Source: Macrostomum lignano
Taxonomy: Eukaryota
Length of the DNA stretch: 64,000 nt
Direction of reading: 5' to 3'
Assembly (NCBI GenBank): GCA_002269645.1
Contig: NIVC01000944.1
Location: forward strand, 186,001-250,000
Positions 1 through 61,400 of the stretch are shown piece after piece (position 1 is the stretch's first letter; each line of letters opens with the position of its first letter). The notes beneath the pieces were generated by a model, which was not told the DNA's origin, ran no database searches, and saw only the letters and a list, made by a program, of their open reading frames with translations. Made by a program: the position numbers and the translations under genes.

Positions 1-215
1 TGCTCTGCAGATCCGATTCTCCCGCCTTGTAACCTTGGGGAGATTCTGTCAAGGATGGAGTCTTTTGTCACGCATGCTTGCAATCCGTGCAATTTCGACT
101 GACTTCTGCCGTCCATTAAGCTTTGCTGTGTATTTGAGTCAATAGATTTTAACCAAAAACCATCAACTGCGAAAACACTAAAATCGTCACATGTCATTCT
201 AACTTTAACTTTAAG

Positions 216-27622
<27,407 letters not shown>

Positions 27623-41030: not shown

Positions 41031-42613
41031 TGGCACAGCTGGGTGTAGACTGAGACTGTGGCATGGTTCCAAATAGCTCTAACTGGCCCAGTATTCAAAG
41101 CAGCTTCACTATTAAGATAGACACTAATCTGAATTATTTCGGTACGTTCCAGTGGTTTGTCTAAGGTGTTTGCAGTTGCACCAGCCGTCAGCAGATCATG
41201 TTGTCATGGCTGCTAACAAGAGTACCGAATCCCGGTATTCCGCCACTCTCAGGAAGGGGCCTTTTTTCGAAAGGCCCAAGCGATTGAAGCGACTGCTTTG
41301 GCGCGTGTTGCCGTCGCAGCAACCGCAGCCGTCACGATGCCCGTCATGCACTAAAATGATGGATCAGATTCGGGCCCAAAACTGTGTAAGTTTTTTATGC
41401 ATATACTAGAAGACGTTAGCAGCCTCGTATATACGAGCGTATATAAGTGTTGTCGATTCTTAAGTTTGAATCTGCTTCGCCACTCTCCTCATTTTTATGT
41501 ACTTAATAGGCCAACAATTGGGCGGAGTTCGTTAAAATCTTCGGAGGTTCAAGCCGAAAATCGTCAGCTGAAAGCTGAAGTTCTTCGGTTGGAAGCTATC
41601 TCCGCTACGAGCTCGTCGGAATCTGGCTCGGAATTCGGAGCCAGGCAGTGCTCTTTCAATCTCGGCCAGCCACAGAGCGGCAAAAGAAGGCGGACCAGGT
41701 GAAGGCGCGACGAATCGCCAGTGCTGCCGAAAATGAGGGGCAGACTTCCGGAAACTGGAACTCCCGCAAAAGACACCGTTAGCAGGATGCAGCTCATCTT
41801 GATGAGTATGCGCATGACCCGGTGCCCGGTATCCGGAGAAGTCCGGGTCGGGCGCATATCTCCAGACGGCGAGCTACTCGAGGAGTGAAATGCGGGCGAT
41901 GTCCAAGATCGAGTGCATAACACCACCACCGCTTTTATTTGCAATTAATTTCTAGCTTTTTGTTAAGGGCACTTTCGCTTGATTTGATTTCATTAGAAAC
42001 GCTCTTCGAGACATTGGCTGTCTACATTTATGAGCCCTGATGGGTCCTGGAAAAGGAGAAAAAAGTCGTTTCTTAATTGTTGCGGAGATCTTTACAATTC
42101 TTAAGCAAGTGAATAGACAAGTCAGCTGACTTGAGTTAACTAGCTAATTAGCTGTATAGCGAGTGACCCACCTGACAGATGCAATCAGAGGTAGGCGATG
42201 GGGATCCCTGAAGAGTAGCCAATGTTGCGATAAGGTGCCCTTGGCACTTGGCATTCTAATTTAAAAACGACCTCCGTTCGCACACTTTGCCTGGATCCAG
42301 TGTACAGGTTCAGCGCCCAGTCCCTACAGCGGTCCGAGCCTCTGTCTTGCCCGCTTTTGTTTCTGCAGCCGCAGCTTCAGGAGACTGGGCGCAGCGATAG
42401 CAGCTCAATGATAATGCAATAAACAGTGACAGTGAAGGACAATAGCATGGATGCGGCGGTAGTGGCAATAGGAGTTGGCTGTCTCAACTTGCTTATATAG
42501 TGCAACACCGCGGCAGCAGAGAATGGCTACTTAACATACATATCTTCTCAGCTGCAGCGGCAGGCCCTCCATTCCGAAACTCTTACCAGCTGTGTCTACT
42601 TGCTCTGTACAGC

Positions 42614-44373
42614 ATGGGTTCGGTGGCTGCGCCCTTTTTGCTCTCCAGCACCGTGTGGCTGCTGGCATCGGCCGTCGCGCTTTGGCCCCTCGCCAGCGCC
42701 ACCTGCAGCATCAGCAGCGGCCCAGCCAACAGCGTCAAATGCCTCAGCATCCCCAGGTACGGCGGCATGCAGTACGCCACCTGCCTGACAAATACCTATA
42801 TTCAGGTCAAGTCCGGCGGCACGCACAGGTAATGCCATGCAAATAGCACAAATTTTATTGAGATTGTGTTCATAAACAGTAAAAAATAGATGGCCGCTAC
42901 GACACTCGCCAATCGTGATAATTTCGCCGGTTTTTTCGTTGCAAAAAAGGAGAGATAGAAAACTTCTCAGCCTGTAGCACGAAACTCCCAATATCTGAAT
43001 TTCTGGACGTCCGAATGAAGCCAGTATGAGTGCAGTTCCGGGGTCTCGCTAAGCACATTGCTACAAAAACCGGGCCTTCAGCGAAGTTTTCATGATTGAT
43101 TTACAAGTGAAAAAGTAGCGTCTGTCTTGTTCTTGGCAGAAGTCAATAATTGTGTTCTGTTCGATTCTTCCCCTATCACGGAATTATTGCCTGCTTGGTT
43201 GAGTTTTCAGGTGCGAGTATACTTACGCTACCTACTGCTACTACCAGTGCATGCTGGAGCTGCATAACTCCAACTCGGGGGCCGTGACACCCGACTGCTC
43301 CTGCGAGGCCTCCGCTGCTCCGACTACAACCCCGGTCTCCGCCGGCACCACCCTGCCGCCGAGCTGCTACAGCCCGACCGGCGAGGACTGCAACTGGTAC
43401 ACCGACTGCCTCGAGCGCAAGGTGCCGTGCGGCCCGCGGAACGGCTACGCGATCGCTTTCGGCAAGAAGTACTGCCAGTTCTACACTGATAACTACTCAT
43501 GGTTCAGCAGTGGGACACGGAAATGGGTCGATGCAGTTCGCAAGTGTCTGCAGGTGGCTCTGGTGCCTCTGTTGCGCCCATTTAAAAATCCTGATTGCCA
43601 AGAGTTGAAGGAAACTGCCATCGCTTCCCACACGGGCTGCTACCTGAGGCCGGCTGTTGGTCAACCATCGATGTGCGACGTAGTAGATAACAACTGCATC
43701 GACATCTTCAAGATTATGTACACAATCAAAGGCGCATTTTGTGGAATCCGACTGGACTGTGTTTACCGGAACGTTGAAATCGTCTGTGGACGTTCTTCAG
43801 GAATGCGCATCGTGGGGAAGAGCCAAGGGCTGCGTTCAAGATGTCATCGAAGGGTCCTGGAATGCTCTTAAATCGGTCGTCTTCGACATCACGCAGAGCG
43901 TGTTCTCCCTGGGCAGGAGGCGCAGGTCTGTGGAGTCAGAGCCCGGGCAGGCCGCCCTGCAGTTCACCGCCGCCCTCGCGACCCGGCTGTCCTGGAAGGA
44001 GCGGGGCATCGAGTGGCTTCCTCTGAGCGTGAAAGGCGGCAGCTCTGGAAGCATCAAGTTCCAGCTCCTGCTTAGAGACCAGCGAGTGTTCAACCTGGAC
44101 AGGAACTATTCGCAGCCAGTGGACCTGCAGCAGGAGGTGCGGGAGCTGCAGAGCAAAGTTCAAAGCGGCGACCTGCTGATCGAACTGAGCGACGGGCGGA
44201 AGTTCTACGCCAGGCAGCTGTCGGACTGCGGCAACGTGAACTGCACCGAAGTCAAGTCCTCAGCCGTCGCTCCGGCTGAGACGCGGGGAGCTCCGGCCGT
44301 GCAGCCTCTGCCGCGGGTGCTGACGGGGATTCTGGCTGTGCTGGCCTGCGCCACCTGGGCCTGGGAAGACTGA
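42614..44373 (+). CDS. Secreted, probably GPI-anchored Cys-rich protein with a stanniocalcin-like (Stc1-type) domain; apparent +1 frameshift at 43737-43740
   Basis: Exons 42614-42828 and 43211-44373 (phase 2). Signal peptide; Cys-rich N domain (KCLSIP...YATC...RC...YCYYQCM...CSC); C.WY.DCLE..VPCG..GYA..FGKKYC...W.DAVRKCLQ.AL...C......SH.GCY; furin-like RRRRS; hydrophobic C-terminus VLTGILAVLACATWAWED*. Confidence 0.75.
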
Positions 44374-44427
44374 CATGAATCTAATTTTCTAATTTTATAT
44401 AGATAAACATTTGTCTGACTGAAAACT

Positions 44428-44480
44428 ATCGTTGTAGAATCGTTGTAGAATCGTTGTAGAATCGTTGTAGAATCGTTGTA
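44428..44480 (+). repeat. 11-bp tandem repeat (ATCGTTGTAGA) x~5 in the 3' region
   Basis: Directly visible. Confidence 0.9.
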
Positions 44481-44741
44481 AGCTTTTGTGCTAAAATTTT
44501 CAAAAGCTTAGCACAAGGACCACTCAAGGATTACTTAAGTCCTATGCGTTATCTTAGTCGTCCTTGGGACAACTGAAGTCACTTCGTTAAGTAGTCCTTG
44601 GCTTAACACTTTTAACAGCTTGTCAATCTATTTCTGTATGAGCAGTGCATCTGAAAGACTCTCGGTCTGCCGGCTTCACTGTCATGGGCAGAATATTGGG
44701 GCATGCTGCAGCCCAATGCCTCCATGCCGGGTCATGCCGGG

Positions 44742-46779
44742 TCACAGCAGGTCTTCGATAGACCGGCCGGGCCGCACGCTGCCCATGACGAGCCGCACAA
44801 ACTCGCGGAAGTCGATCTGACCGTCGCCGTCGACGTCCGTCTCTTTTATCATGTCGCGGGCCTCCGCCATGGTTACGGGCTCGCCCAGGGCCGTCATGAA
44901 CGCCACCAGCTCCTCGGGGTCGATGGTCCCGGAGCCGTCGGTGTCAAACAAGGCGAACGCGCTCCGAAGGTCGGTGCGGGAGTCATCGGCGGTCAGGCCG
45001 CGGCAGAGCACGGAGACGAACTCGGTGAAGTCGATCTGCCCGTCTCCGTCGTCGTCCACGAAGTCCAGCATGGCCTGAGGGCGAAGGCGGGACGGCGAAG
45101 ACTTGCGATCGTCGTGATGTCAGTGTGTGGTGTGTCTGATGTCAGTGTGTGGTGTGTCTGATGTCAGTGTGTGGTGTGTCTGATGTCAGTGTGTGGTGTG
45201 TCTGATGTCAGTGTGTGGTGTGTCTGATGTCAGTGTGTGGTGTGTCTGATGTCAGTGTGTGGTGTGTCTGATGTCAGTGTGTGGTGTATCTGATGTCAGT
45301 GTGTGGTGTGTCTGATGTCAGTGTGTGTTGTGTCTGATGTCAGTGTGTGGTGTGTCTGATGTCAGTGTGTGGTGTGTCTGATGTCAGTGTGTGGTGTGTC
45401 TGATGTCAGTGTGTGTTGTGTCTGATGTCAGTGTGTGGTGTGTCTGATGTCAGTGTGTGGTGTGTCTGATGTCAGTGTGTGGTGTGTCTGATGTCAGTGT
45501 GTGGTGTGTCTGATGTCAGTGTGTGGTGTGTCTGATGTCAGTGTATGGTGTGTCTGATGTCAGTGTATGGTGTGTCTGATGTCAGTGTGTGGTGTATCTG
45601 ATGTCAGTGTGTGGTGTGTCTGATGTCAGTGTGTGTTGTGTCTGATGTCAGTGTGTGGTGTGTCTGATGTCAGTGTGTGGTGTGTCTGATGTCAGTGTGT
45701 GGTGTGTCTGATGTCAGTGTGTGGTGTGTCTGATGTCAGTGTCTGGTGTGTCTGATGTCAGTGTGTGGTGTGTCTGATGTCAGTGTGTGGTGTGTCTGAT
45801 GTCAGTGTGTGGTGTGTCTGATGTCAGTGTGTGGTGTGTCTGATGTCAGTGTGTGGTGTGTCTGATGTCAGTGTGTGTTGTGTCTGATGTCAGTGTGTGG
45901 TGTGTCTGATGTCAGTGTGTGGTGTGTCTGATGTCAGTGTGTGTTGTGTCTGATGTCAGTGTGTGGTGTGTCTGATGTCAGTGTGTGGTGTGTCTGATGT
46001 CAGTGTGTGTTGTGTCTGATGTCAGTGTGTGGTGTGTCTGATGTCAGTGTGTGGTGTGTCTGATGTCAGTGTGTGTTGTGTCTGATGTCAGTGTGTGGTG
46101 TGTCTGATGTCAGTGTGTGGTGTGTCTGATGTCAGTGTGTGGTGTGTCTGATGTCAGTGTGTGTTGTGTCTGATGTCAGTGTGTGGTGTGTCTGATGTCA
46201 GTGTGTGGTGTGTCTGATGTCAGTGTGTGGTGTGTCTGATGTCAGTGTGTGGTGTGTCTGATGTCAGTGTCTGGTGTGTCTGATGTCAGTGTGTGGTGTG
46301 TCTGATGTCAGTGTGTGTTGTGTCTGATGTCACTCTTGATGTGTCTGACCTTCATGTCCCAGTAATTCTGGGTAGTTACGCTAAGTTAGCTAAGTAACCA
46401 AGGCAATGCCTGAACGCTTAACCTGGCTCGAAAGATTTACACAAGGATCACTATAGAAGTTACCTTTGTACAAGGGTACGAGTATTTACATTGCCTAGCT
46501 GTCCAGAAGTCTGTCCAGCTGTAGCTTTCATGTTTCATGGTTTGTACGATTTATCTTAGCCAACAAAGCCTGCAGTCTCACCTGAACCTGCTCGTCCTTC
46601 GCTTTGTAGCCCAAGGTGCGCATGATGTAGGCCAGCTCCGAGTGCGAGATGAAGCCGTCGCCGTCTTTGTCGAAGTAGGCGAACGCGTCGCGGAACTCGG
46701 CAATCTGGGCGCTGTCCAAGTTGCTCACAACGCCCGTATCCCTCCGCTGCTGCGGCTGCTCAGGCTGCTGGGCAGACAT
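44742..46779 (-). CDS. Calmodulin-like four-EF-hand protein (~176 aa)
   Basis: Exons 46582-46779 and 44742-45074, phase-0 GT-AG intron. EF loops DKDGDGFISHSE, DDDGDGQIDFTE, DTDGSGTIDPEE, DVDGDGQIDFRE; QIAEFRDAFAYFD opening. Confidence 0.92.
45113..46333 (+). repeat. 20-bp minisatellite (GTGTGGTGTGTCTGATGTCA) x~61 filling the calmodulin-like intron
   Basis: Directly visible; very homogeneous. Confidence 0.98.
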
Positions 46780-47357
46780 GCTTCTCAGCTTTAGCCTGCT
46801 CAGGAATTTGCTAACACTTGCAGGCTCAAGCAGCTCTTTTTGCTACTCTTTAATTCCACTGCAAGAGGTGGGGCGAAATGAAATCTCTGAGTGTCACGGG
46901 CAGGCTGCACATTTGCCTGCACTGTACGTTACAGACCTATTAACTGTGAGCTTGAGAGCAGAATTTCTACTTGTAACTTTTTTATCTGCTTGTCAAGCAG
47001 AGCGCCCCCCCCCCTTAGTGCACACAGTTCATTGTTGCAGATCTTCATGCTGTGCAAGACCGACCGCGCGCTTTGCAGGGAAATGCCTTGCCAACTTGCC
47101 TGAAGCTGGGTGATAAGTTTTATACTCTCTTTAAATAAGTCAAAGCAGACACGATAAAAGTGTACTCGGATGCGTAATAAAGTTTTGATGACGCTTCGTA
47201 GCTCCTTAGCGTATATTTGTGAACTCTTGCTTATACTTGTAATAAACAGCAGAAAATCACATTTATACTATATAATCATTAGATTTGTTTGTTACCTACA
47301 TGTACTAAGTGCACAGTACAGTGCATATTGTTCTTAGAGCAGTGCCGATTCACACGC

Positions 47358-48126
47358 TCAGGTCGCAGCTTTGCGCAGCGCTTCAAAAGTCGTGGCGAGA
47401 TCCCGGACCAACTTCTGCGTCTCCTTGATCTGGCCGGCCTGCGCCTCCAGACCGTTCAGAATGTTCACCAGAGCTTCGTTCGCCTGCGATACGATTGGTG
47501 CGAGCATATGCTCAAGGTTTGGCCTCCGCTTCAGCAGTCCCTTCAGCTTGTTCAGCCCCTTCTTCAAGTGACGGAAGACGTTCAGCTTGCGGAATATCCT
47601 CCGGATCCTCGGCAGACGGAGTCTAAAGCGCCGCAGGCGGATCCTCGGCAGGCGGATCCTCGGAAGGCGGATCCTCGGAAGGCGGATCCTCCGAAGGCGG
47701 ATTCTCGGCAGGCGGATCCTCGGCAGGCGGATCCTCGGCAGGCGGATCCTCGGTAGGCGGAAGCGGAAACGCCTCCATTTCTGCTGCAGTTGGACTTCTT
47801 CTTCGGGACTCAGATCGTACTGTTGTGGGCGAAGCATTGCAACGATAAGGTTAAAACACGCCGGATGCGACGGTACGGGGAGCTGTTTGATTTCTCACCA
47901 CATCGGGGTCGTCCAGCAGCTCCAGCGCCTCCAGGTTGTCCGCCTCAGCCTCGTCAGCGGGCTCCAACAGGTTCTCCTCTACTGGAGACTCCGCTTCGGC
48001 TGCCAGCTTCTCCTCGGGTTCCGCGGCCACCGCCTCACCCAGGTGGGCGGCTGCGGCTCCTAGGAGCAGCAGCAGCAGCGGCAGCAGGTGCAACCGGTAG
48101 CCGGTGAGCATTTTCCCGGTAGCCAT
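47358..48126 (-). CDS. Secreted precursor A (229 aa): signal peptide, acidic propiece, QQKW, (LPRIR)n Arg/Pro-rich region, amphipathic basic segment, coiled-coil-like tail
   Basis: Exons 47899-48126 and 47358-47819; 79-bp phase-0 intron GTGAG...CAACAG. Spliced junction reads LELLDDPDV|[26 protein letters not shown]. Confidence 0.85.
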
Positions 48127-48182
48127 GCCTGTAGCAGAGCTGGGGTGCGAGAGACGCGGGCCTGAGAGCTGCGCGGGCACCG

Positions 48183-48218
48183 CTTTTATGCAGCCGCCCG
48201 AAACCCGGATTCCCCGCG
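48183..48218 (-). promoter_or_regulatory. TATA-like box plus upstream GGGGAATCC (kB-like) motif of precursor A
   Basis: Sense CGCGGGGAATCCG-N15-CATAAAAG, 57 bp above the ATG; a similar arrangement occurs at precursor B. Confidence 0.45.
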
Positions 48219-48446
48219 TGAATCCGTCTTTTGCTTCTGACAAAAGGAAAACAGGGGGGGGGGGCAGCAATTCCCGGAGCTCTGAGTCCCGCCTCCGTGC
48301 CGGCCGAATTCCGGATGTGAGAGGCTGCAGACTGCAGGCCTCAAGTTGACGCAGAGCTTTTCTTTTCGCGTGAGCAGTACAGGAACAATGAAGATGGACG
48401 TAAATTTTCGCGAAGATCCGCGGATCATCCAGACTGGCTCAGACTA

Positions 48447-48538
48447 GCGTGATGTCTGCGTGATGTCTGCGTGATGTCTGCGTGATGTCTGCGTGATGTC
48501 TGCGTGATGTCTGCGTGATGACTGCGTGATGTCTGCGT
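48447..48538 (+). repeat. 11-bp tandem repeat (GTGATGTCTGC) x~8
   Basis: Directly visible. Confidence 0.95.
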
Positions 48539-49049
48539 GGAAGCAGGCATGCTTGATGTTTTTTAACCCTAGCGAGTTCTAACGATTCAAAACACGCAAG
48601 TAGCGATCGGAATGAGAAATCATGCATTGATTCGTCTCTCCCTGTCCCATTTCAGAGTTTTGTTTTACAAATACTGCTCACCACCTTGTCAAAGTTTCCA
48701 TTTTAAAATTATGCAATCGCATCTTTGCATTTTTCATGTTTTACAAAATTTAATCAATTAACAAAGAAAAAGCAAAATATATTGATTTTTCATAACGGAA
48801 AGAGTAAATACGAGATACGCTCGTAGCTGTTCAAATTTATTAATATTTAGCGCTTGTTTCACTCGAAGAGTTGCAATAATCACTACAGGATGTTTAGTCA
48901 CGCATGTAATTACTGGAAACCGTAAAGTCTATAATTATATATGGAGCTGTAAGTTTCTCATTCATTAACCTCTCTGAGACATAAATCATAGCTATTTATT
49001 GTCCGCAGTTCTCAATTGAGCTCAGCAACCCGGGCCAGTCGGGATTGCC

Positions 49050-49514
49050 TCAGCCGACGCGGCGGCTCAGGGACTCCTGGTCGCGCGCCAGCCGCAGCAC
49101 CGCCTGCTGGATCTGCGCCAGACCCTTGGACTGCGCCTGCATCTCGTTGCTCATCTGCTGCATGACATCGCTGAGGCGGTTGATGGCGCTCGTTGGCCTC
49201 ATGCGGGCGGCCTCCGCCAAGCGGGCGCGCATGCCGCTGAAGTCGGTGCGCAGGCTGCTGAAGCGGGGCGTCCACTTCTGCTGCTGGCTGAGGCTCGACT
49301 GGAATGCGCAGGGTCAGGAGGGTCAAGAGGTCAGTCAGGGCGAGTAGCCACTCAAGTCAATTTTCGGGTGCGAGTCTCAAGTTAATACTTAGTTAAGACT
49401 TACGTCATCAATCTCAGCAGCTCCATCCGAAGAGTCGGGCTCACTTTGAGCAGCGGCTGCTCCTAGAAGCAGCAGCACGGCGAGGGCCGCGGTGGGAAGC
49501 AGTTGGGTGCGCAT
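49050..49514 (-). CDS. Secreted precursor B (119 aa), paralogue of precursor A without the LPRIR repeat
   Basis: Exons 49404-49514 ([37 protein letters not shown]) and 49050-49298 (SSLSQQQKWTPRFSSLR...ESLSRRVG*); 105-bp phase-0 intron GTAAGT...TTCCAG. Confidence 0.85.
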
Positions 49515-49610
49515 TGCGTTGCGTTCGTCTCTGTGGGGCTTCTTGAGCTCGGGCTGGGTCTGAGGTCTCGGGTCGAGAGATGAAGGCCTCGCGGCCACTC
49601 GGCCTGGCGG

Positions 49611-49645
49611 CTTTTTATTGCGCCGGCAATCCGGGATTCGCCGCG
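49611..49645 (-). promoter_or_regulatory. TATA-like box plus CGCGGCGAATCCCG motif of precursor B
   Basis: Sense CGCGGCGAATCCCG-N11-CAATAAAAAG, about 97 bp above the ATG. Confidence 0.4.
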
Positions 49646-50094
49646 CAGCTCCGGGATCCGAGGCACTCGTTGCAGAGGCGAGTGGCGTCCCCGAGTCCAG
49701 GATTTTCGCGGCTCAAAGTTAGAAATAAAATCAGTGCTACCTGCTCTCCACGAATCCAGGAGTTGCACTGGGGTTGTGCGGAGTGCTGGCAGGACAATAG
49801 GCTTGAGCAGAGGGCGGCAGAGTGAGCACACTAGTAAATATTTTCAAGCGGAGAGTTCTCTGGCCTTAATGATAATGATGGCCAGGCTTTTTTGAGCATT
49901 TCTATTTGCAGGTCTGCATTTCTCCTAAAGCAAAGAGCAAGATTTTCTTGAAAATATGACTGTGAATTTAGAAGCCAATGCTGTACTTTCGAGAGGCAAT
50001 CATTTTTACATATAAGGAAAATTAAAGAAAACTTGAAATTTGGGAATTGGTCAGAGAACCAGACTGAACGGAAAAATGTTGCTTAAAAAGCGAG

Positions 50095-51399
50095 AGTGAA
50101 TGTGAATCCGAGTGTTAGTGTGAATGTGAACCTGAGTGTTAGTGTGAATGTGAATCTGAGTGTTAGTGTGAATGTGAATCCGAGTGTTAGTGTGAATGTG
50201 AATCTGAGTGTTAGTGTGAATGTGAATCCGAGTGTTACTGTGAATGTGAATCCGAGTGTCAGAGTGAATGTGAATCCGAGTGTTAGTGTGAATGTGAATC
50301 CGAGTGTTAGTGTGAATGTGAATCCGAGTGTTAGTGTGAATGTGAATCCGAGTGCGAGAGTGAATGTGAATCCGAGTGTTAGTGTGAATGTGAATCCGAG
50401 TGCGAGAGTGAATGTGAATCCGAGTGTTAGTGTGAATGTGAATCTGAGTGTTAGTGTGAATGTGAATCTGAGTGTTAGTGTGAATGTGAATCTGAGTGCA
50501 AGTGTGAATGCGAATCTGAGTGTTAGTGTGAATGTGAATCTGAGTGTTAGTGTGAATGTGAATCTGACTGTTAGTGTGAATTTGAATCTGAGTGTTAGTG
50601 TGAATGTGAATCTGAGTGCAAGTGTGAATGTGAATCTGAGTGTTAGTGTGAATGTGAATCTGAGTGTTAGTGTGAATGTGAATCCGAGTGTTAGTGTGAA
50701 TGTGAATCCGAGTGTCAGAGTGAATGTGAATCCGAGTGTTAGTGTGAATGTGAATCCGAGTGTTAGTGTGAATGTGAATCCGAGTGTTAGTGTGAATGTG
50801 AATCCGAGTGCGAGAGTGAATGTGAATCCGAGTGTTAGTGTGAATGTGAATCCGAGTGCGAGAGTGAATGTGAATCCGAGTGTTAGTGTGAATGTGAATC
50901 TGAGTGTTAGTGTGAATGTGAATCTGAGTGTTAGTGTGAATGTGAATCTGAGTGCAAGTGTGAATGTGAATCTGAGTGTTAGTGTTAATGTGAATCTGAG
51001 TGTTAGTGTGAATGTGAATCCGAGTGTTAGTGTGAATGTGAATCTGAGTGCTAGTGTGAATGTGAATCTGAGTGTTAATGTGAATGTGAATCTGAGTGTT
51101 AGTGTGAATGTGAATCTGAGTGTCAGAGTGAATGTGAATCTGACTGTTAGTGTGAATGTGAATCTGAGTGCTAGTGTGAATGTGAATCTGAGTGTTAGTG
51201 TGAATGTGAATCTGAGTGTTAGTGTGAATGTGAATCCGAGTGTTAGTGTGAATGTGAATCTGAGTGTTAGTGTGAATGTGAATCTGAGTGTTAGTGTGAA
51301 TGTGAATCTGAGTGTCAGAGTGAATGTGAATCTGAGTGTTAGTGTGAATGTGAACCTGAGTGTTAGTGTGAATGTGAATCTGAGTGTTAGTGTGAATGT
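50095..51399 (+). repeat. 24-bp satellite (GTGAATGTGAATCTGAGTGTTAGT) x~54, intergenic
   Basis: Directly visible; source of the spurious 439-aa VNVNLSVS ORF. Confidence 0.98.
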
Positions 51400-51766
51400 T
51401 TATCTGCTTCAGTAGCTGCCTCGATAACAGCTAGCGTAAAAAGCTACAGAAATTTTTTGCGATATGCACTACTTATCCAGTCTGGCCAGTAGTGACCATA
51501 GACTTTAAATGTACACGTAAATTAAATTTTGTCAATGCACTTTTAAAAATGATGCAGGAATGTTGACAAACAGCTTTAGTATAACCTTGAACTCTTGAAC
51601 TTTGGTGGCTCAGTGTCGTATTTTATTGAGACAAGGCAATAAATCACAGTATTTAACATGCAGCATAGCAATTTTGTATTTAAAAATCATATACTGATCA
51701 CATGGCATTGAAACAGCAAAGTCTCGGCCTGCTTCCAATGTACACAGCGCGGCCTCAGGTGCGGCC

Positions 51767-54700
51767 TCAGGTGAAGAAGTACTGCATCTCCTCCTCCTCC
51801 CTGTTCAGCCGCTCGTTCTCCCCGTCGTCCTTCTTGCGCACCGCGGGCGGGTTGCTGCGCGCCATGACCCGGCGGCCCTCGTACTTCTTGGGAGGCTCCT
51901 TCGCGCGCTCCAGGGCGCGGCGCACGCGCTCCTCCTGGCGCAGGCGCTCCTGCTCCTTCTTGTCCTCGCGGGCCTTCAGCCGGCGCTCCTTGTCTTTGGA
52001 CTGCGGCGGGCGGCAGGGTGGGGGTCAACAGAACGGCAATGATAAAATTTGAATTCGCGCGAAAAGTTAAAATACGCTTTGTAGTTACTGCAGCGAAAAG
52101 CAGGCACAGAGTTCCGAGTTTGCGGCTTAAATTGGCACCACCATTTTTTACTAGAGGCAGGGACTGTGTGCACCTGGCGTACTTGAAGCGACATAGGCAC
52201 ACAACCGGCGAGAGGCATTGCTGCCCATTCCGCCGACTCCCCTGAGCAGGCACACAAGCGCGCGGATACGTACGCAGGCACACACTCACACAGGAGTGTA
52301 CAGCGGCCCTAATGTTATTTATCGTTAGGCATGTACACTTCACCGTGCCTGTGTCGTCTAGCAGTTCAAAACCATGAAAGCCAAGAGTGTACATGCCTGA
52401 CGATTAGAAAGTCAGGGCCACTGTACACGCTGTGTGAGCTGTGTGTATGAGTTGGTGCCTGCATACAGTATTGGCGCACTTGTGTGTGCTCAGGTGTCAG
52501 TGGAATGAGCAGGATTGGGTAGCCGCAGCTCTCCTGCGGTTATTATTATTTTCCATGGCTAGCGGTCTCGTCATCTCACCTTTTGAGCAGCTTCCACCAG
52601 CTCAGGCGGCAGCAGCTCCAGGGTCTGGAACAGGTACTCAATGCGGTTCTCGATGTCCGTGAGCATCTGCAGGGTGCTGGAGTGACAGGTAGGTGAAATG
52701 TCTGTGAGGCACAATGCGATAGAGATTTTGTTCGACACCAAGACTAATACACTAAAACTAAACTAGCAGAACAAAGACTTAAAATAGACAGTGAAAAATC
52801 CGTGCAATTTATTTGATCGTGCAAGTCAGCGGCACGATGCGGCAGCTCCAGTCTACGTACAGAGTGTGAAAGTTCGGTTCTAATGCAGCTCTGAGGCTGA
52901 GACCTGTTCGAAGTCTGGCTACTGCGGTGCTTTGAGCAGGCAGTCGGTGAGTGATTGACTGGGTGCACAACTTAGTGACCTTTAACGGCCCCTGTGCGTT
53001 GCTTGTGGAAGCTTTGGACAGGCAGATGGCATAGGACTCAGCATTCACGACCCATTTCTACATGACTCACTTCCATTCACGATCCATTTCTACATGACTC
53101 ACTTCCATTCACGACCCATTTCTACATGACTCACTTCATTCACGACCCATTTCTACATGACTCACTTCCATTCACGACCCATTTCTACATCACTCACTTC
53201 ATTCACGACCCATTTCTACATGACTCACTTCATTCACGACCCATTTCTACATGACTCACTTCCATTCACGACCCATTTCTACATGACTCACTTCATTCAC
53301 GACCCATTTCTACATGACTCACTTCATTCACGACCCATTTCTACATGACTCACTTCCATTCACGACCCATTTCTACATCACTCACTTCCATTCACGACCC
53401 ATTTCAACATGACTCACTTCATTCTTGACCCATTTCTACATGACTCACTTCATTCTTGACCCATTTCTACATGACTCACTTCCATTCACGACCCATTTCT
53501 ACATGACTCACTTCCATTCACGACCCATTTCTACATGACTCACTTCCATTTACGACCCATTTCCACATCACTCACTTCCATTCACGACCCATTTCTACAT
53601 GACTCACTTCATTCTTGACCCAGCTTCACCATCTGCACATCAGCATCATGTGTTGCAATCTCAGTTAAGCATGAGGAAGCCACCTGAGCCACACAACATT
53701 CACAGCCCATTCCATCACGTGACCGACTGCAGCCCAGACTGCTGCTGTCCAAGCAGTCCCCATGCAGAGTCTGAGAGCGCAGCCGCCGCACTCACTCCAG
53801 CGGATTGATCATCCGCTTGCCGTCCTGGCGCGTTGGCGCGCTTCCGCCGCCGACCTCGTCGCTAATTAAATTTGAATTCCCAGGGATTTTGTTAATATTG
53901 GCTTGTTTCAATTTCTCCCAAGCAAATTTTACGGGTTGTTTTGTTTCACGGGTTGATGAGCAGTAAAATAAAAAGGTGGTAATTTGAAATATTGAAAAGC
54001 AAACATAAAAGCGGACCAAGTCCTGTTTTACTTAAGCAATGCTCATTTGGCAACTTGTGCTCACCTGATGCTGGCCTCATTATCGCCGAAGCAGGCCCTG
54101 TACACCTCCTCCACCTTGCCGTTCAGGCTCTGCAGCATCTCCTCCTGTTCCTCTGCGTCCAGCTTCCCGAATGAGAACAGCCTGTGGGTTGATGGGGAAC
54201 TCACTGATGAGGCCAGGGGCAGCTGAGGTCACTGACAGCTGGGAGAAGGGTCAGCTGAGGTCACTGACAGCTGGGAGACAGGGGCAGCTGAGGTCACTGA
54301 CAGCTGGGAGACAGGGGCAGCTGAGGTCACTGACAGCTGGGAGACAGGGGCAGCTGAGGTCACTGACAGCTGGGAGACAGGGGCAGCTGAGGTCACTGAC
54401 AGCTGGGAGACAGGGGCAGCTGAGGTCACTGACAGCTGGGAGACAGGGGCAGCTGAGGTCACTGACAGCTGGGAGACAGGGTCAGCTGAGGTCACTGACA
54501 GATGGGAGACAGGGTCAGCTGAGGTCACTGACAGCTGGGAGACAGGGGCAGCTGAGGTCACTGACAGATGGGAGACAGGGTCAGCTGAGGTCACTGACAG
54601 CTGGGAGACAGGGGCAGCTGAGGTCACTGACAGCTGGGAGACAGGGTCAGCTGAGGTCACTGACAGCTGGGAGACAGGGGCAGCTGAGGTCACTGACAGC

Positions 54701-55198
54701 TGGGAGACAGGGTCAGCTGAGGTCACTGACAGCTGGGAGACAGGGTCAGCTGAGGTCACTGACAGCTGGGAGACAGGGTCAGCTGAGGTCATAGTCGGAG
54801 CCACTCACTTGCACTTGATCTCCAGCTCCCGAGCCTTGGACTCCTCGCGCTCGATGGACTTGTTGAGCTTGTCGATTTGCTCGTTGAGCGTCTTGGTCTC
54901 CCTGTCCATCCGGCGGCTGAGGATCTGGTTGGACTGGCGCAGCTCCTCCAGGGTCTCCTCGGACTCCTGGCAGTTCTGGATGAGGTTCAGGTTGGACTCC
55001 TCCAGCTCGGTGAAGATCTGCAGCAGCTCCTGCGGCTTGCTGAAGTAAAGCTCCAGGTCCTGCGGGCGCGGTTGGGTAACTGATTGACTGACTGACTGAC
55101 TGACTGACTGACTGACTGACTGACTGACTGACTGACTGACTGACTGACTGACTGACTGACTGACTGACTGACTGACTGACTGACTGACTGACTGACTG

Positions 55199-55235
<37 letters not shown>

Positions 55236-55345
55236 TTAACTAATTAACTAACTAACTGACTAACCAACTAACTAACTAACTAACTAAATAACTAACTAAC
55301 TGACTAACCAACTAACTAACTAACAAACTAACTAACTAAATAACC

Positions 55346-55416
<71 letters not shown>

Positions 55417-58400
55417 AAACAAACAAACTAACTAACTAAATAACTAACTAACTGACTAACCAACTAACTAACTAACTCACCTCCTCATCATCGCTCTCCA
55501 CCTCGGCCAAGAACCGCTCCAGGGCAGCCCGGCTGTTCTCATCCTCATCCAGGGCCCTGGACAGTAGATGAGCAATAGAAATCGAGCGTTTAAATTCGTG
55601 CGAACAGAAACATACAAGTTTAAACAAACGAAAATTTATACGGAAGCGACAGTGGCGGAGAGTTTACTGAATTTCTGGCTCAGTTCATCAACTACTACTG
55701 GCAGCAATAACACGAGAGCTGATAGGTGTTACTAAATAAACATACTTTGACTCCAAAGACTCGCTAAAAAATAAAAATCATCCGAAGCTCGGAAACTTTA
55801 AAAACCGAACAGCTTTTAACAAAAAGATAAACACAGTCACAGTAGCGCCTGTTTGGCGCAATATACCTTTTTTTAAACTCTTAGTCAGCATTTAGTCAGC
55901 CTAAAAGCGATGGGCTGCAAAGCGCATTCACCTGCTGATGAGATTCGCTAGTTGGGTCGGGGAATCAGTAGAGTCAGAGGCCAAGCCAAGGGAGAGTCTG
56001 GGTAGTCAGCTGGAATTTGAAGAGAGTCAAGAGGGTCAGGTCAGGAAGGTCTTGGGAGATTGGGAGATTGGGAGATTGGGGGAGCTTCAGAGAGAGAGTC
56101 AGGGAGAGTCAGGAGGGTCAGAGAGAGTCAGGAGGGTCAGGGAGAGTCAGGAGAGTCAGGGAGAGTCAGGAGGGTCAGGGAGAGTCTGGAGGGTCAGGGA
56201 GAGTCAGGAGGGTCAGGGAGAGTCAGGAGGGTCAGGGAGAGTCAGGAGTGTCAGGGAGAGTCAGGAGGGTCAGGGAGAGTCAGGAGGGTCAGGGAGAGTC
56301 AGGGAGGGCAGGAAGGAGAGTCGGGAGGGCAGGAGGGAGAGTCAGGAGGGTCAGGAGGGTCAGGGAGAACCAGGAAGGGCACGAGAGAGAGTCAGGGAGA
56401 ATCAGGAGGGTCTGAGAGAATCAGGAGTCTGGGGAGTCAGAAGGGTCAACGGAGAGTCGTGAGGGTCAGGGAGAGTCAGGAGGGTCAGTGAGAGTCAGGA
56501 GGGTCAGGGAGAGTCAGGAGGGTCAGGGAGAGTCAGGAGGGTCTGGGAGAGTCAGGAGGGTCAGGGAGAGTCAGGAGGGTCAGGGAGAGTCAGGAGGGTC
56601 AGAGAGAGTCAGGAGGGTCAGGGAGAGTCAGGAGGGTCAGGGAGAGTCTGGAGGGTCAGGGAGAGTCAGGAGGGTCAGAGAGAGTCAGGAGGGTCAGGGA
56701 GAGTTAGGAGTGTCAGGGAGAGTCAGGAGGGTTAGAGAGAGTCAGGAGGGTCAGGGAGAGTCAGGGAGGGCAGGAGGGAGAGTCAGGAGGGTCAGGAGGG
56801 TCAGGGAGAACCAGGAAGGGCAGGAGAGAGAGTCAGGGAGAATCAGGAGGGTCTGAGAGAATCAGGAATCTGGGGAGTCAGAAGGGTCAGGGAGAGTCAG
56901 GAGGGTCAGGGAGAGTCAGGAGGGTCAGGGAGAGTCAGGAGGGTCAGGGAGAGTCAGGAGGGTCAGGGAGAGTCAGGAGGGTCAGGGAGAGTCAGGAGGG
57001 TCAGAGAGAGTCAGGAGGGTTAGAGAGAGTCAGGAGGGTCAGGGAGAGTCAGGAGGGTCAGGGAGAGTCAGGAGGGTCAGGGAGAGTCAGGAGGGTTAGA
57101 GAGAGTCAGGAGGGTCAGAGAGAGTCAGGAGGGTCAGGGAGAGTCAGGAGGGTTAGAGAGAGTCAGGAGGGTCAGAGAGAGTCAGGAGGGTTAGAGAGAG
57201 TCAGGAGGGTCAGGGAGAGTCAGGAGGGTCAGGGAGAGTCAGGAGGGTTAGAGAGAGTCAGGAGGGTCAGGGAGAGTCAGGAGGGTCAGAGGGGTTAAGG
57301 GAGTCAGAGGAAACCACAGGAGTCTTTGAGTCAGGGGGATCAGGTGGTCAGCAGTCACCCAGCATCCGGTATCTGCAACCCCGGGTTCCCCAGCACCACA
57401 GGCAAGACAAATCGAGCGCTCAGCCAGCAGGAAGCTGCGCACCGCCTCAGAGAACAACAAAGAGAACTGAACGACATTTCAAAGCAGCGGAGGGGCAGCC
57501 GCGCAAGCAGAAAAAACTGACAGGCGCTTTCTTTCGGCCGCCCTGCGCCGCAGCCTTCCGACTGCGCTGAGGGCGCCAAGGGTGGCCAGGAGGCCCGCGC
57601 CGCCCCCCGCTGCGGGAGACGGCGGCGAGCGGCTGATGAAGGGCGCCGACGACCGTCCGCTCCTGAGGATTCGGGCAGGGAGTTCAGTGCAGCCGCCGCG
57701 GCTTCTGGCTGCCCAGAGCGGCGGACTCCGGGCTTCTCTGCTGAGTTCTTCATGGCACTGCGTCTGTGACTGCTGCCTGGGCCTGCCTCCAGCCTCTCTG
57801 CCTCTTTGGCTCCCTGCCTCCCTGCCTCCCTGCCTCTCTGCCTCCCTGCCTCCCTGCCTCCCTGCCTCCCTGCCTCGCTACCTCCCTGCCTCTCTGCCTC
57901 TCTGCCTCGCTACCTCCCTGCCTCTTTGCCTCTCTGCCTCTTTGGCTCCCTGCCTCTGCCTCCCTGCCTCTGCCTCCCTGCCTCTCTGCCTCTCTGCCTC
58001 CCTGCCTCTTTGCCTCCCTGCCTCTCTGCCTCCCTGCCTCTCTGCCTCTCTGCCTCGCTACCTCCCTGCCTCTTTGCCTCTCTGCCTCTTTGGCTCCCTG
58101 CCTCTGCCTCCCTGCCTCTGCCTCCCTGCCTCTCTGCCTCTCTGCCTCCCTGCCTCTTTGCCTCCCTGCCTCTTTGCCTCCCTGCCTCTCTGCCTCCCTG
58201 CCTCTCTGCCTCCCTGCCTCTCTGCCTCCCTGCCTCGCTACCTCCCTGCCTCTCTGCCTCTCTGCCTCGCTACCTCCCTGCCTCTCTGCCTCTCTGCCTC
58301 TTTGGCTCCCTGCCTCTGCCTCCCTGCCTCTGCCTCCCTGCCTCTCTGCCTCTCTGCCTCCCTGCCTCTTTGCCTCCCTGCCTCTCTGCCTCCCTGCCTC

Positions 58401-61400
58401 TCTGCCTCTCTGCCTCGCTACCTCCCTGCCTCTTTGCCTCTCTGCCTCTTTGGCTCCCTGCCTCTGCCTCCCTGCCTCTGCCTCCCTGCCTCCCTGCCTC
58501 TCTGCCTCCCTGCCTCTCTGCCTCTCTGCCTCGCTACCTCCCTGCCTCTTTGCCTCTCTGCCTCTTTGGCTCCCTGCCTCTGCCTCCCTGCCTCTGCCTC
58601 CCTGCCTCTCTGCCTCTCTGCCTCCCTGCCTCTTTGCCTCCCTGCCTCTCTGCCTCCCTGCCTCTCTGCCTCCCTGCCTCTCTGCCTCCCTGCCTCTCTG
58701 CCTCCCTGCCTTTCTGCCTCCCTGCCTCTCTGCCTCCCTGCCTCTCTGCCTCCCTGCCTCTCTGCCTCCAGCCTCTCTGCCTCTCTGCCTCCCTGCCTCT
58801 CTGCCTCCAGCCTCTCTGCCTCTCTGCCTCCAGCCCCTCTGCCTCCCTGCCTCTGCCTCCCTGCCTCTCTGCCTCTCTGCCTCCCTGCCTCTTTGCCTCC
58901 CTGCCTCTTTGCCTCCCTGCCTCTCTGCCTCCCTGCCTCTCTGCCTCCCTGCCTCTGCCTCCCTGCCTCTCTGTCTCTCTGCCTCCCTGCCTCTTTGCCT
59001 CCCTGCCTCTCTGCCTCCCTGCCTCTCTGCCTCTCTGCCTCCCTGCCTCCCTGCCTCTCTGCCTCCCTGCCTCTTTGCCTCCCTGCCTCTCTGCCTCCCT
59101 GCCTCTCTGCCTCCCTGCCTCTCTGCCTCCCTGCCTCTTTGCCTCTCTGCCTCTCTGCCTCCCTGCCTCTCTGCCTCCCTGCCTCTCTGCCTCCAGCCTC
59201 TCTGCCTCTCTGCCTCCAGCCCCTCTGCCTCCCTGCCTCTCTGCCTCCCTGCCTCTTTGCCTCCCTGCCTCTCTGCCTCCCTGCCTCTCTGCCTCCAGCC
59301 TCTCTGCCTCTCTGCCTCCAGCCCCTCTGCCTCCCTGCCTCTGCCTCCCTGCCTCTCTGCCTCTCTGCCTCCCTGCCTCTTTGCCTCCCTGCCTCTCTGC
59401 CTCCCTGCCTCTCTGCCTCCCTGCCTCTCTGCCTCCCTGCCTTTCTGCCTCCCTGCCTCTCTGCCTCCCTGCCTCTCTGCCTCCCTGCCTCTCTGCCTCC
59501 AGCCTCTCTGCCTCTCTGCCTCCAGCCCCTCTGCCTCCCTGCCTCTCTGCCTCCCTGCCTCTCTGCCTCCCTGCCTCTCTGCCTCCCTGCCTCCCTGCCT
59601 CTCTGCCTCCAGCCTCTCTGCCTCTCTGCCTCTCTGCCTCTCTGCCTCCCTGCCTCTCTGCCTCTCTGCCTCTCTGCCTCCCTGCCTCCCTGCCTCTTTG
59701 CCTCCCTGCCTCTTTGCCTCCCTGCCTCTCTGCCTCCCTGCCTCTCTGCCTCCCTGCCTCTCTGCCTCCCTGCCTTTCTGCCTCCCTGCCTCTCTGCCTC
59801 CCTGCCTCTCTGCCTCCCTGCCTCTCTGCCTCCAGCCTCTCTGCCTCTCTGCCTCCAGCCCCTCTGCCTCCCTGCCTCTCTGCCTCCCTGCCTCTTTGCC
59901 TCCCTGCCTCTCTGCCTCCCTGCCTCTCTGCCTCCAGCCTCTCTGCCTTTCTGCCTCCAGCCCCTCTGCCTCCCTGCCTCTGCCTCCCTGCCTCTCTGTC
60001 TCTCTGCCTCCCTGCCTCTTTGCCTCCCTGCCTCTCTGCCTCCCTGCCTCTCTGCCTCCCTGCCTCTCTGCCTCCCTGCCTTTCTGCCTCCCTGCCTCTC
60101 TGCCTCCCTGCCTCCCTGCCTCTACCTCTTTGCCTCCCTGCCTCTCTGCCTCCCTGCCTCTTTGCCTCCCTGCCTCTCTGCCTCCCTGCCTCTCTGCCTC
60201 CAGCCTCTCTGCCTCTCTGCCTCCAGCCCCTCTGCCTCCCTGCCTCTGCCTCCCTGCCTCTCTGCCTCTCTGCCTCCCTGCCTCTTTGCCTCCCTGCCTC
60301 TCTGCCTCCCTGCCTCTCTGCCTCCCTGCCTCTCTGCCTCCCTGCCTTTCTGCCTCCCTGCCTCTCTGCCTCCCTGCCTCTCTGCCTCCCTGCCTCTCTG
60401 CCTCCAGCCTCTCTGCCTCTCTGCCTCTACCTCTCTGCCTCCCTGCCTCTCTGCCTCCCTGCCTCTCTGCCTCCCTGCCTCCCTGCCTCTCTGCCTCCCT
60501 GCCTCTCTGCCTCCAGCCTCTCTGCCTCTCTGCCTCTCTGCCTCCCTGCCTCTCTGCCTCCCTGCCTCTCTGCCTCTCTGCCTCCCTGCCTCTTTGCCTC
60601 CCTGCCTCTCTGCCTCCCTGCCTCTCTGCCTCCCTGCCTCTCTGCCTCCCTGCCTTTCTGCCTCCCTGCCTCTCTGCCTCCCTGCCTCTCTGCCTCCCTG
60701 CCTCTCTGCCTCCAGCCTCTCTGCCTCTCTGCCTCTACCTCTCTGCCTCCCTGCCTCTCTGCCTCCCTGCCTCTCTGCCTCCCTGCCTCCCTGCCTCTCT
60801 GCCTCCCTGCCTCTCTGCCTCCAGCCTCTCTGCCTCTCTGCCTCCCTGCCTCTCTGCCTCCCTGCCTCTCTGCCTCCCTGCCTCTCTGCCTCCCTGCCTC
60901 CCTGCCTCTCTGCCTCCCTGCCTCTCTGCCTCCAGCCTCTCTGCCTCTCTGCCTCTGTGCCTCCCTGCCTCTCTGCCTCCAGCCTCTCTGCCTCTCTGCC
61001 TCTCTGCCTCCCTGCCTCTCTGCCTCCCTGCCTCCCTGCCTCTCTGCCTCTTTGGTTCCCTGCCTCCCTGCCTCTCTGCCTCCCTGCCTCTCTGCCTCCC
61101 TGCCTCTCTGCCTCCCTGCCTCCCTGCCTCCCTGCCTCCCTGCCTCCCTGCCTCAGCCTCCCTGCCTCGCTGCCCTCAGCCTCCCTGCCTCTGCCTCCCT
61201 GCCTCTCTGCCTCCCTGCCTCTCTGCCTCCCTGCCTCTCTGCCTCCCTGCCTCTGCCTCCCTGCCTCTACCTCCCTGCCTCTGCCTCCCTGCCTCTGCCT
61301 CCCTGCCTCTCTGCCTCCCTGCCTCCCTGCCTCTCTGCCTCCCTGCCTCTCTACCTCCCTGCCTCTCTGCCTCCAGCCTCTCTGCCTCCCTGCCTCTCTG

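Follow-up and report, generated by a model that had tools for sequence, protein, structure and literature searches.

A tryptophan-led pentapeptide repeat in a small secreted protein of Macrostomum lignano and its apparent relatives in other animals

A 15-bp minisatellite in the flatworm Macrostomum lignano is a transcribed coding exon of a small secreted protein, in which it specifies a tandem array of the pentapeptide LPRIR introduced by a tryptophan. The array lies in a 64,000-nucleotide (nt) stretch of contig NIVC01000944.1 (assembly GCA_002269645.1, positions 186,001 to 250,000, forward strand), the whole of which was analyzed and is hereafter called the window. The parts of the encoded protein follow one another as signal peptide, acidic propiece, Trp-led (LPRIR)n polycation with a basic helix, a tribasic KRR site, and a 54-amino-acid (aa) helical tail. 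GenBank already lists the gene model, as a hypothetical protein; the novelty lies in the design of this precursor and in a repeat module that apparently has not been described and that recurs across phyla. Sequence comparisons make the gene a candidate precursor of a host-defence peptide, a reading that we weigh below against four alternatives.

A transcribed coding repeat and the precursor that carries it

The open reading frame (ORF) with the array (47358..47837, minus strand) belongs to a two-exon gene whose coding parts, 48126..47899 and 47819..47358, yield a product of 229 aa. Along its entire length, this product matches the GenBank 'hypothetical protein BOX15_Mlig026096g1' (Macrostomum lignano) at 100% identity. 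Because the GenBank annotation of the M. lignano assembly was built from an RNA-seq-guided transcriptome (PMC5730564), strand, splice, and frame have transcript support. Together with the in-frame splice to a signal-peptide exon and the conservation of a paralogue, this identity bears out the strand and frame that had been assumed in a preliminary description of the repeat. Minus-strand translation of 47777..47523 gives a cationic peptide of 85 aa that agrees letter for letter with the one described earlier, including its 38 basic residues (32 Arg and 6 Lys) and the absence of Asp and Glu; the span of 47505-47760 assigned to it was about 17 nt too low. Partial GenBank proteins begin 9 to 12 codons 5' of the ATG, and the transcript start therefore falls ~25 to 35 nt downstream of a TATA-like box (Table 1). 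Neither the repeat strings nor the gene identifier (ID) was found in the literature searched, and an Rfam scan of the window gave no match.

Tandem Repeats Finder (TRF) places the 15-bp array at 47633..47761 (8.6 copies, 93% matches), and the unit CCGAGGATCCGCCT occurs eight times with two or fewer mismatches, compared to 0.28 expected, at no other site in the window. The coding minisatellite of the preliminary description is thus confirmed by both the array and its translation. The nine core units comprise six distinct DNA units that encode three peptide units in the coding frame (7/9 are LPRIR), whereas the other five frames across the array yield four to six peptide variants each, so that the coding frame has the fewest of the six. 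Five of the seven single-base variants in the array are synonymous (CTA/CTT/CTG, AGG/AGA), and the remaining two are CCG>CGG changes that replace Pro with Arg. In the old ninth unit, LRRFR, both Arg residues are retained despite multi-base codon changes (AGG>CGC, CGC>AGA). On these counts the earlier statement, of varying codons around a preserved protein unit, is correct, with few events behind it. Opposite-strand ORFs encoding (ADPRQ)n and (GRRIL)n were rejected as mirror ORFs of the repeat, given that they show more peptide variants and have no gene context. We propose that array length would change by slippage or unequal exchange, and that selection would hold the reading frame and the hydrophobic/Arg pattern.

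The signal peptide of the gene was assigned by inspection. The propiece that follows (H28-K90; 63 aa, the last 14 encoded by exon 2) carries a net charge of -20 and the cationic part one of +38 (0.45 per residue), so the propiece offsets about half of the charge of the polycation. Proline makes up 8/85 residues of the cationic part (9%), one per five-residue unit, with no PRP or PP motif; there is no cysteine in the propiece or anywhere else in the 229 aa. K90 directly precedes W91 (QQK followed by WRRFRFR), and KRR (K173-R-R175) closes the basic helix. The conserved helical tail beyond KRR, which is missing from the preliminary description, has a net charge of -1 from LEHML onward (52 residues).

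Predicted structures were of low confidence. For the whole protein, with a shallow alignment, AlphaFold2 reached a mean predicted local distance difference test (pLDDT) score of only 56; it modeled the repeat as an extended coil, neither helix nor strand (pLDDT about 71), and placed helices at residues 146-153, 156-174 (pLDDT about 64), 176-204, and 208-228. A second run, using the module alone with 13 relatives, again returned coil with a predicted template modeling (pTM) score of 0.15, and both models remained low in confidence (repeat pLDDT 64 to 73, pTM 0.15 to 0.22). Foldseek found no match with E below 1 for the AlphaFold2 model in the PDB. The hydrophobic moment of the basic helix peaks at 0.57, where shuffles average 0.40 (p = 0.087; p = 0.011 in the paralogue), and that of the repeat is strong only at the trivial five-residue period. 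Pfam and PDB sequence searches with the whole protein, the cationic part, and the tail gave sub-threshold noise only (TetR, ApoB, RH1, NEMO), with no cecropin-family Pfam match for the cationic segment; a homology search with the tail alone returned zero matches, itself included, and is thus uninformative. The amphipathic, cecropin-like helix proposed earlier therefore survives as a low-confidence predicted helix of modest amphipathicity, without the cecropin match.

Table 1 Features of the repeat gene and of the adjacent gene in the window (basis of each assignment in the last column)
Feature	Position	Strand	Basis
TATA-like box CATAAAAG, within promoter block shared with paralogue	48183..48190	-	Read from sequence
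Exon 1 coding part: signal peptide and start of acidic propiece	47899..48126	-	ATG at 48126; sequence reading
Signal peptide, M1 to about A27	48126..48046	-	Basic n-region, hydrophobic core, AAA ahead of likely cleavage site
Intron, 79 nt, phase 0, GTGAGA...CAACAG (donor at 47898, acceptor ends at 47820)	47820..47898	-	Removal restores frame and GenBank protein exactly
End of acidic propiece, 14 residues from exon 2	47778..47819	-	Translation
Lead-in WRRFRFR, conserved module start	47757..47777	-	Same position in P0003, P0032, P0042, P0043
Repeat array: nine 15-bp units (47756..47622), then degenerate LR-LPRIR-R	47598..47756	-	TRF, unit counts, paralogue alignment
Basic helix ending in tribasic KRR	47523..47600	-	AlphaFold2, hydrophobic moment, paralogue comparison
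54-aa near-neutral helical tail PNLEHML...LRKAAT and stop codon	47358..47522	-	AlphaFold2, dN/dS against c1
Adjacent two-exon gene, exons 49514..49404 and 49298..49050, ~0.9 kb upstream of repeat gene	49050..49514	-

A paralogous locus on contig NIVC01000939.1 (L002) is collinear with window positions 41924..57344, minisatellites included, and contains two copies of the gene. Copy c1 encodes an intact protein (P0002) with ten near-perfect LPRIR units and RRK in place of KRR. Copy c2 (L002 11626..12337) lies 0.8 kb downstream of c1 and is a 770-bp partial duplicate that lacks the promoter. Now a pseudogene, it has lost 32 nt from exon 1, shifts frame between repeat and helix, and retains ~3 units of a decayed array. 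The tribasic site is present in all three copies (KRR, RRK, KRR). Compared to c1, the 5' untranslated region (UTR) is 100% identical, the 130 nt upstream of it are 90% identical, and 6/79 intron positions differ. Nonsynonymous (dN) and synonymous (dS) divergence from c1, based on small substitution counts, was 0.006 and 0.05 in exon 1, 0.228 and 0.133 in the basic helix, and 0.132 and 0.428 in the tail (52 residues from LEHML); the tail ratio of 0.31 points to purifying selection. Propiece and tail thus look constrained, and the helix looks relaxed or diversifying. The window gene is also a mosaic (47345..48170): promoter, exon 1, and intron are 90 to 100% like c1, whereas helix and tail are 94 to 95% like c2 and 82 to 84% like c1, indicating gene conversion or unequal exchange among the copies.

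The gene lies between a C10 tract (47006..47015) and a G11 tract (48254..48264; both as read on the plus strand), which are ~1.25 kb from each other. The upstream tract is absent from the paralogue, and the paralogue alignment breaks down near the downstream one. The tracts may have arisen as a homopolymer artefact of sequencing or assembly, or they may mark the scar of a rearrangement.

Relatives of the Trp-led module in other organisms

Apart from the two M. lignano proteins, a word-indexed search retrieved only a metatranscriptome protein, P0003, and an exhaustive HMMER search of 1.84 billion representatives gave 329 matches at E <= 0.001, all through the repeat region. The three best HMMER matches, 6 to 7 thousand aa long, are vertebrate AHNAK2 and were set aside as unrelated low-complexity proteins, as were several bacterial-type matches in which LPKxK or MPRVQ arrays accompany SPOR or peptidoglycan-binding domains. 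What remains is a coherent set of short proteins with an N-terminal signal peptide, a Trp and RFRFR-like lead-in, and 4 to 14 units of the pattern hydrophobic-[P/R]-R-hydrophobic-R (nine units in the window gene, ten in c1), including the variants LPRIR, VPRVR, IPRIT, and IPRYR. The lead-in reads WRRFRFR, WGRFRFR, or WGRRFRFR at the same position in P0003, P0032, P0042, and P0043, and a Trp stands within 10 aa ahead of the first unit in 15/32 short matches (binomial P = 8e-8). Over the lead-in and first two units, Macrostomum and Paralvinella agree at 15/17 residues, in a low-complexity sequence with differing intron positions. The named sources comprise three species, with the annelid Paralvinella palmiformis (P0032, P0071, P0145) and the cnidarian Sanderia malayensis (P0075) beside M. 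lignano, and all other relatives are metagenomic or metatranscriptomic sequences. No Pfam family, solved structure, or paper was found that matches the repeat module of the window gene. Judged from these comparisons, the Trp-led pentapeptide module is apparently an undescribed family of secreted animal peptides.

The module occurs in two settings. It either starts right after the predicted signal cleavage (...ES|WGRFRFR, ...EG|WGRFRFR, ...EA|WGPRIR) or follows an Asp/Glu-rich propiece with a basic site (KKDPLW, KHDPLW, KRDALF, KKAPGW; QQKW in the window gene). All propiece-bearing relatives have a basic residue or pair 0 to 4 residues ahead of the Trp. What comes after the module is more varied: nothing but a GKK/GKKK or similar amidation-type end (P0024, P0026, P0068, P0087), a mini-domain with four Cys followed by GKR (P0044, P0069, P0148, P0152-P0157), a larger Cys-rich domain (P0003, P0019, P0041), or an EF-hand pair (P0042). 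In the Sanderia protein, the W-led module stands between an acidic propiece, itself preceded by a signal peptide, and a basic helix (GRLIRRFVRSRLVRRIKKVGRKV) followed by a further C-terminal domain; as predicted from its sequence, this protein repeats the whole design of the window gene. The bipartite plan of repeat plus helix put forward in the preliminary description hence recurs in a jellyfish, with the reservation that the M. lignano helix is modeled at low confidence and is modestly amphipathic.

A eukaryotic subfamily was seen at L003 and L004 (ENA ERZ25878362) and L006 (GCA_949826985.1), in which a signal peptide is followed by W(G/A)PRIR units, a 4-Cys segment (CG..LV.RV..VC motif), GKR, and a short acidic tail. 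Several paralogues are present, and retrotransposon genes are close by.

At two Paralvinella loci (GCA_025642065.1), exons for the signal peptide and module precede exons of a peptidoglycan-recognition protein (PGRP) on the same strand. In L007 (6001..7631), the annotated model (P0071) has a splice that leads from the module into the first PGRP exon, and this exon and the next match solved PGRP structures (E = 2e-12) and Pfam Amidase_2 (E = 6e-5). In L005 (4001..8659), the P0032 model is followed, 1.4 kb downstream, by the PGRP exons. This link, read from gene structure, is the strongest evidence on the use of the module, and it is indirect. The Paralvinella GenBank models appear to split one module-PGRP gene in two or to truncate it, and the C-terminus of P0032 resembles intron read-through.

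Proposed function and its alternatives

Bac5, Bac7, and PR-39 are linear, Cys-free, Arg-rich cations with regular prolines and short tandem motifs, released from secreted precursors with a masking propiece. Peptides of this type kill without lysing the cell, entering by a transporter and binding the ribosome or DnaK. The preliminary description had called the likeness to these peptides compositional only, and this is what we found: no sequence homology to Bac5, Bac7, or PR-39 was detected, and a Pfam scan of the full 229-aa precursor returned no cathelicidin (cathelin proregion), PGRP, or other domain. Cathelicidin-derived peptides contain roughly 30 to 50% Pro and PRP/PPXR motifs, in contrast to 9% Pro and a strict hydrophobic-P-R-hydrophobic-R pattern in the window protein, which also differs from Bac5, Bac7, and PR-39 in its much higher charge density and in the basic helix and helical tail appended to the repeat.

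Other precursors are similar in layout. Crustacean peptides of the arasin/penaeidin type join a Pro/Arg-rich stretch after the signal peptide to a Cys-rich domain (PMC12466427), an arrangement matched by the relatives with a 4-Cys domain and GKR end (P0044, P0148, P0152-P0157); the window protein, unlike these peptides, has no cysteine, a basic helix as its second module, and a regular pentapeptide array. In Hydra arminins and periculins, a signal peptide and anionic N-part precede a cationic C-part (PMC12466427), and the same order of parts, with a basic processing site, is found in the window precursor, whereas the active part of arminins is a short helix rather than a repeat array and the window protein adds a neutral tail after KRR. 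Some relatives of the module end in GKK, as amidated peptides do. Among PGRPs with N-terminal effector-like domains, those of Paralvinella carry the Trp-led module in that place, and the M. lignano protein has no PGRP domain. By sequence, the window protein is not a member of the cathelicidin, arasin/penaeidin, or cecropin families, and it would be similar in working to precursors that pair an anionic propiece with a cationic peptide, to the linear Pro/Arg-rich peptides, and to the arasin/penaeidin chimeras.

Rfr pentapeptide-repeat proteins (PF00805) also have a period of five, with hydrophobic residues at i-2 and i if the unit is phased I-R-L-P-R. The Sanderia protein lies marginally above the PF00805 threshold (21.4 vs 20.2 bits), and the window protein has no PF00805 match even at E up to 10. 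The right-handed quadrilateral beta-helix fold of pentapeptide repeats finds no support in the two low-confidence AlphaFold2 runs (coil) or in Foldseek (no match) and was set aside; a surface charge of +2 per unit would disfavour such folding unless a polyanion were bound, a state in which, given the low confidence of the models, it may still form.

That the M. lignano gene encodes the precursor of a host-defence (antimicrobial) peptide is the best of the readings, and one we regard as evenly poised. The protein would enter the regulated secretory pathway and be stored with its polycation masked by the acidic propiece. Cuts of the convertase type, near K90/W91 and at K173-R-R175, would free either the whole polycationic peptide or a repeat peptide and a helix peptide, plus a tail peptide. 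The extended, disordered Arg/Leu/Ile repeat could then bind polyanionic microbial surfaces (lipopolysaccharide, teichoic acids, peptidoglycan) and permeabilize, damage, or aggregate bacteria, either alone or together with the basic helix, and would on that account be a host-defence effector. The amidation-type ends (GKK/GKKK/GKR) and 4-Cys domains of the relatives are hints of processing in this direction. The bipartite host-defence peptide suggested in the preliminary description is thus consistent with a secretory precursor that has a -20 propiece, the typical layout of cationic-peptide precursors, and PGRP-fused relatives, and finds no backing in homology to Bac5, Bac7, PR-39, or cecropin. 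A broader and more tentative reading, to which we give less credence, is that the Trp-led array is an ancient, portable innate-immune effector module common to Cnidaria, Annelida, and Platyhelminthes. Such a module may act by itself as an amidated peptide, follow an acidic propiece, or be joined to a helical, 4-Cys, or PGRP partner.

Several points weigh against a host-defence role. Low-complexity arrays can converge, and the top-scoring matches, AHNAK2 and the bacterial LPKxK-type proteins, are clearly unrelated. The PGRP link belongs to the annelid relatives and not to the M. lignano gene. The cleavage sites are putative, with a single Lys ahead of the Trp in the M. lignano gene, and the conserved C-terminal tail plays no part in the model. 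Charge density is higher (0.45 per residue) and proline lower (9%) than in characterized Pro/Arg-rich antimicrobial peptides. The gene ID and sequence were not found in the supplements of the M. lignano papers searched. Finally, a probable paralogue next to the gene (described below) is without the array, which could therefore be a recent local expansion.

The last point leads to the view that the array is a tolerated in-frame minisatellite expansion with no function of its own, its cross-phylum likeness being low-complexity convergence. The units are nearly identical in DNA, i.e., homogenized; their number varies among copies, one of which has decayed; the adjacent probable paralogue has a single unit; the window is rich in minisatellites; and the HMMER search also retrieved the unrelated AHNAK2 and bacterial repeat proteins. 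A neutral array is nevertheless hard to square with a frame held across 9 to 10 units in two intact copies, Arg residues kept in old units through double synonymous changes, a propiece whose charge roughly equals that of the array, and the recurrence across phyla of the Trp-RFRFR lead-in at the signal-peptide or propiece boundary (P = 8e-8), and we consider this explanation quite unlikely. A structural polycation of a gland secretion is also unlikely, though less so. The array would in that case condense or cross-link polyanions (sulfated mucus, glycocalyx, or adhesive partners) in granules or after release, like the Lys/Arg-rich regions of Mlig-ap1, a very large cohesive adhesion protein of M. 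lignano with KR regions of >3,600 aa and lectin, vWD, and other domains (PMC6410801). Adhesion in this animal is modulated by polyanions as well as polycations and relies on a secreted protein that is extremely basic and rich in Lys and Arg (PMC6410801). Mlig-ap1, which interacts with polyanions (PMC6410801), and the window protein come from the same animal and are both secreted, extremely basic, and repetitive, and the latter has a signal peptide, its own polyanionic propiece, a repeat predicted to be extended or disordered as in coacervating proteins, and an array whose length differs among copies. Unlike Mlig-ap1, however, it is a protein of 229 aa with a propiece and processing sites and without a lectin, vWD, or other interaction domain; relatives with amidation-type ends or PGRP fusions are ill-suited to glue, and the family is present in a pelagic jellyfish.

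A secretion of reproductive glands (prostate or seminal fluid, antrum, eggshell gland) that acts on sperm, partner tissue, or egg coats seems very unlikely. The prostate and other tail glands of M. lignano express many lineage-restricted secreted proteins (PMC5977470), the locus shows gene duplication and decay, and dN exceeds dS in the helix between paralogues (0.228 vs 0.133), as in fast-evolving reproductive proteins. This excess arises from ~15 substitutions, is non-significant, and is seen in antimicrobial peptides alike, whereas the PGRP fusion of relatives points to immunity; neither the gene nor its sequence turned up in the supplement text of the seminal-fluid screen. Most improbable, in our estimate, is a signaling-peptide precursor in which the active product is the 54-aa tail after KRR, or pentapeptides cut from the array, and the rest is spacer. 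Its attraction is that the tail is under the clearest purifying selection (dN/dS 0.31) behind a tribasic site kept in all three copies, and that the adjacent probable paralogue has a tail-like helix ending in Gly (an amidation signal) without the array. Yet a Gly-basic amidation site is absent, as are acidic spacers between the units, the variation of units among relatives is unfit for a receptor ligand, a tail is missing from relatives made up of nothing more than signal peptide, propiece, module, and GKK, and the tail itself found no relatives in the Pfam and PDB searches.

Neighboring genes and significance

The adjacent two-exon gene (Table 1) has the same signal-peptide core, LLLLGAAAA, as the repeat gene, and a common 26-nt pattern is found only in these two (0 expected). 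Its further features are a phase-0 intron, 'QQKW' ahead of one TPRF unit, and a helical tail with Gly as the last residue; the two proteins are weakly similar (BLASTP E = 0.096, hhalign E = 0.059). Based on these features, we take the adjacent gene for a probable, distant tandem paralogue in which the repeat is not expanded, and the array has either expanded in the repeat gene or collapsed in its neighbor. An AATAAA is present at about 48990, past the adjacent gene.

Farther away, long ORF pieces on the plus strand of 1..13400 are rich in N-glycosylation sequons and include a C-type lectin domain at 10095..11072 and one of the WSC type at 12709..13353. They resemble the exons of a large receptor gene, polycystin-like or lectin, and a near-duplicate pair of ORFs (266..754 and 2364..2849) is suggestive of internal repeats. 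At 43251..44373 (plus strand), a pair of overlapping ORFs (206 and 210 aa) encodes a Cys-rich protein with no Pfam match and a C-terminal hydrophobic stretch, probably secreted or membrane-bound. The downstream neighbor of the repeat gene is an EF-hand gene (44790..44957, minus strand), as in L002 (14892..17948), and a 22-bp satellite (45115..46348) lies apparently within its intron. The EF-hand pair of relative P0042 and this gene match at only 35% over 57 aa, which was dismissed as generic EF-hand similarity and is probably a coincidence.

Minisatellites with periods of 8 to 33 bp are extraordinarily dense over 44428..63731, including a 5-kb (CTGCCTCT)n array at 57783..62828 with a GC skew of -0.6. 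Most of them occupy the same positions in L002 (87 to 95% identity), indicating that the arrays predate the duplication and lie in introns of the flanking genes; L002 carries a DUF4200 gene model at the minisatellite region.

The antimicrobial peptides of marine flatworms are largely unexplored, according to a 2025 review (PMC12466427), and the M. lignano gene is a transcript-supported candidate in a transgenic model species amenable to RNA interference. Should it instead prove to be a structural polycation, it would bear on charge-driven secretion and adhesion chemistry in M. lignano. If active, the peptide would represent a new class of Arg-rich repeat peptide and a simple system for the tuning of peptide length by coding minisatellites, given copies with 9, 10, and ~3 units and gene conversion among them. 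If the module is indeed an ancient immune effector, free-living flatworms would gain their first recognized family of gene-encoded antimicrobial peptides, and the extended polycationic pentapeptide repeat, perhaps ordered only on polyanionic bacterial surfaces, would form a new structural class.

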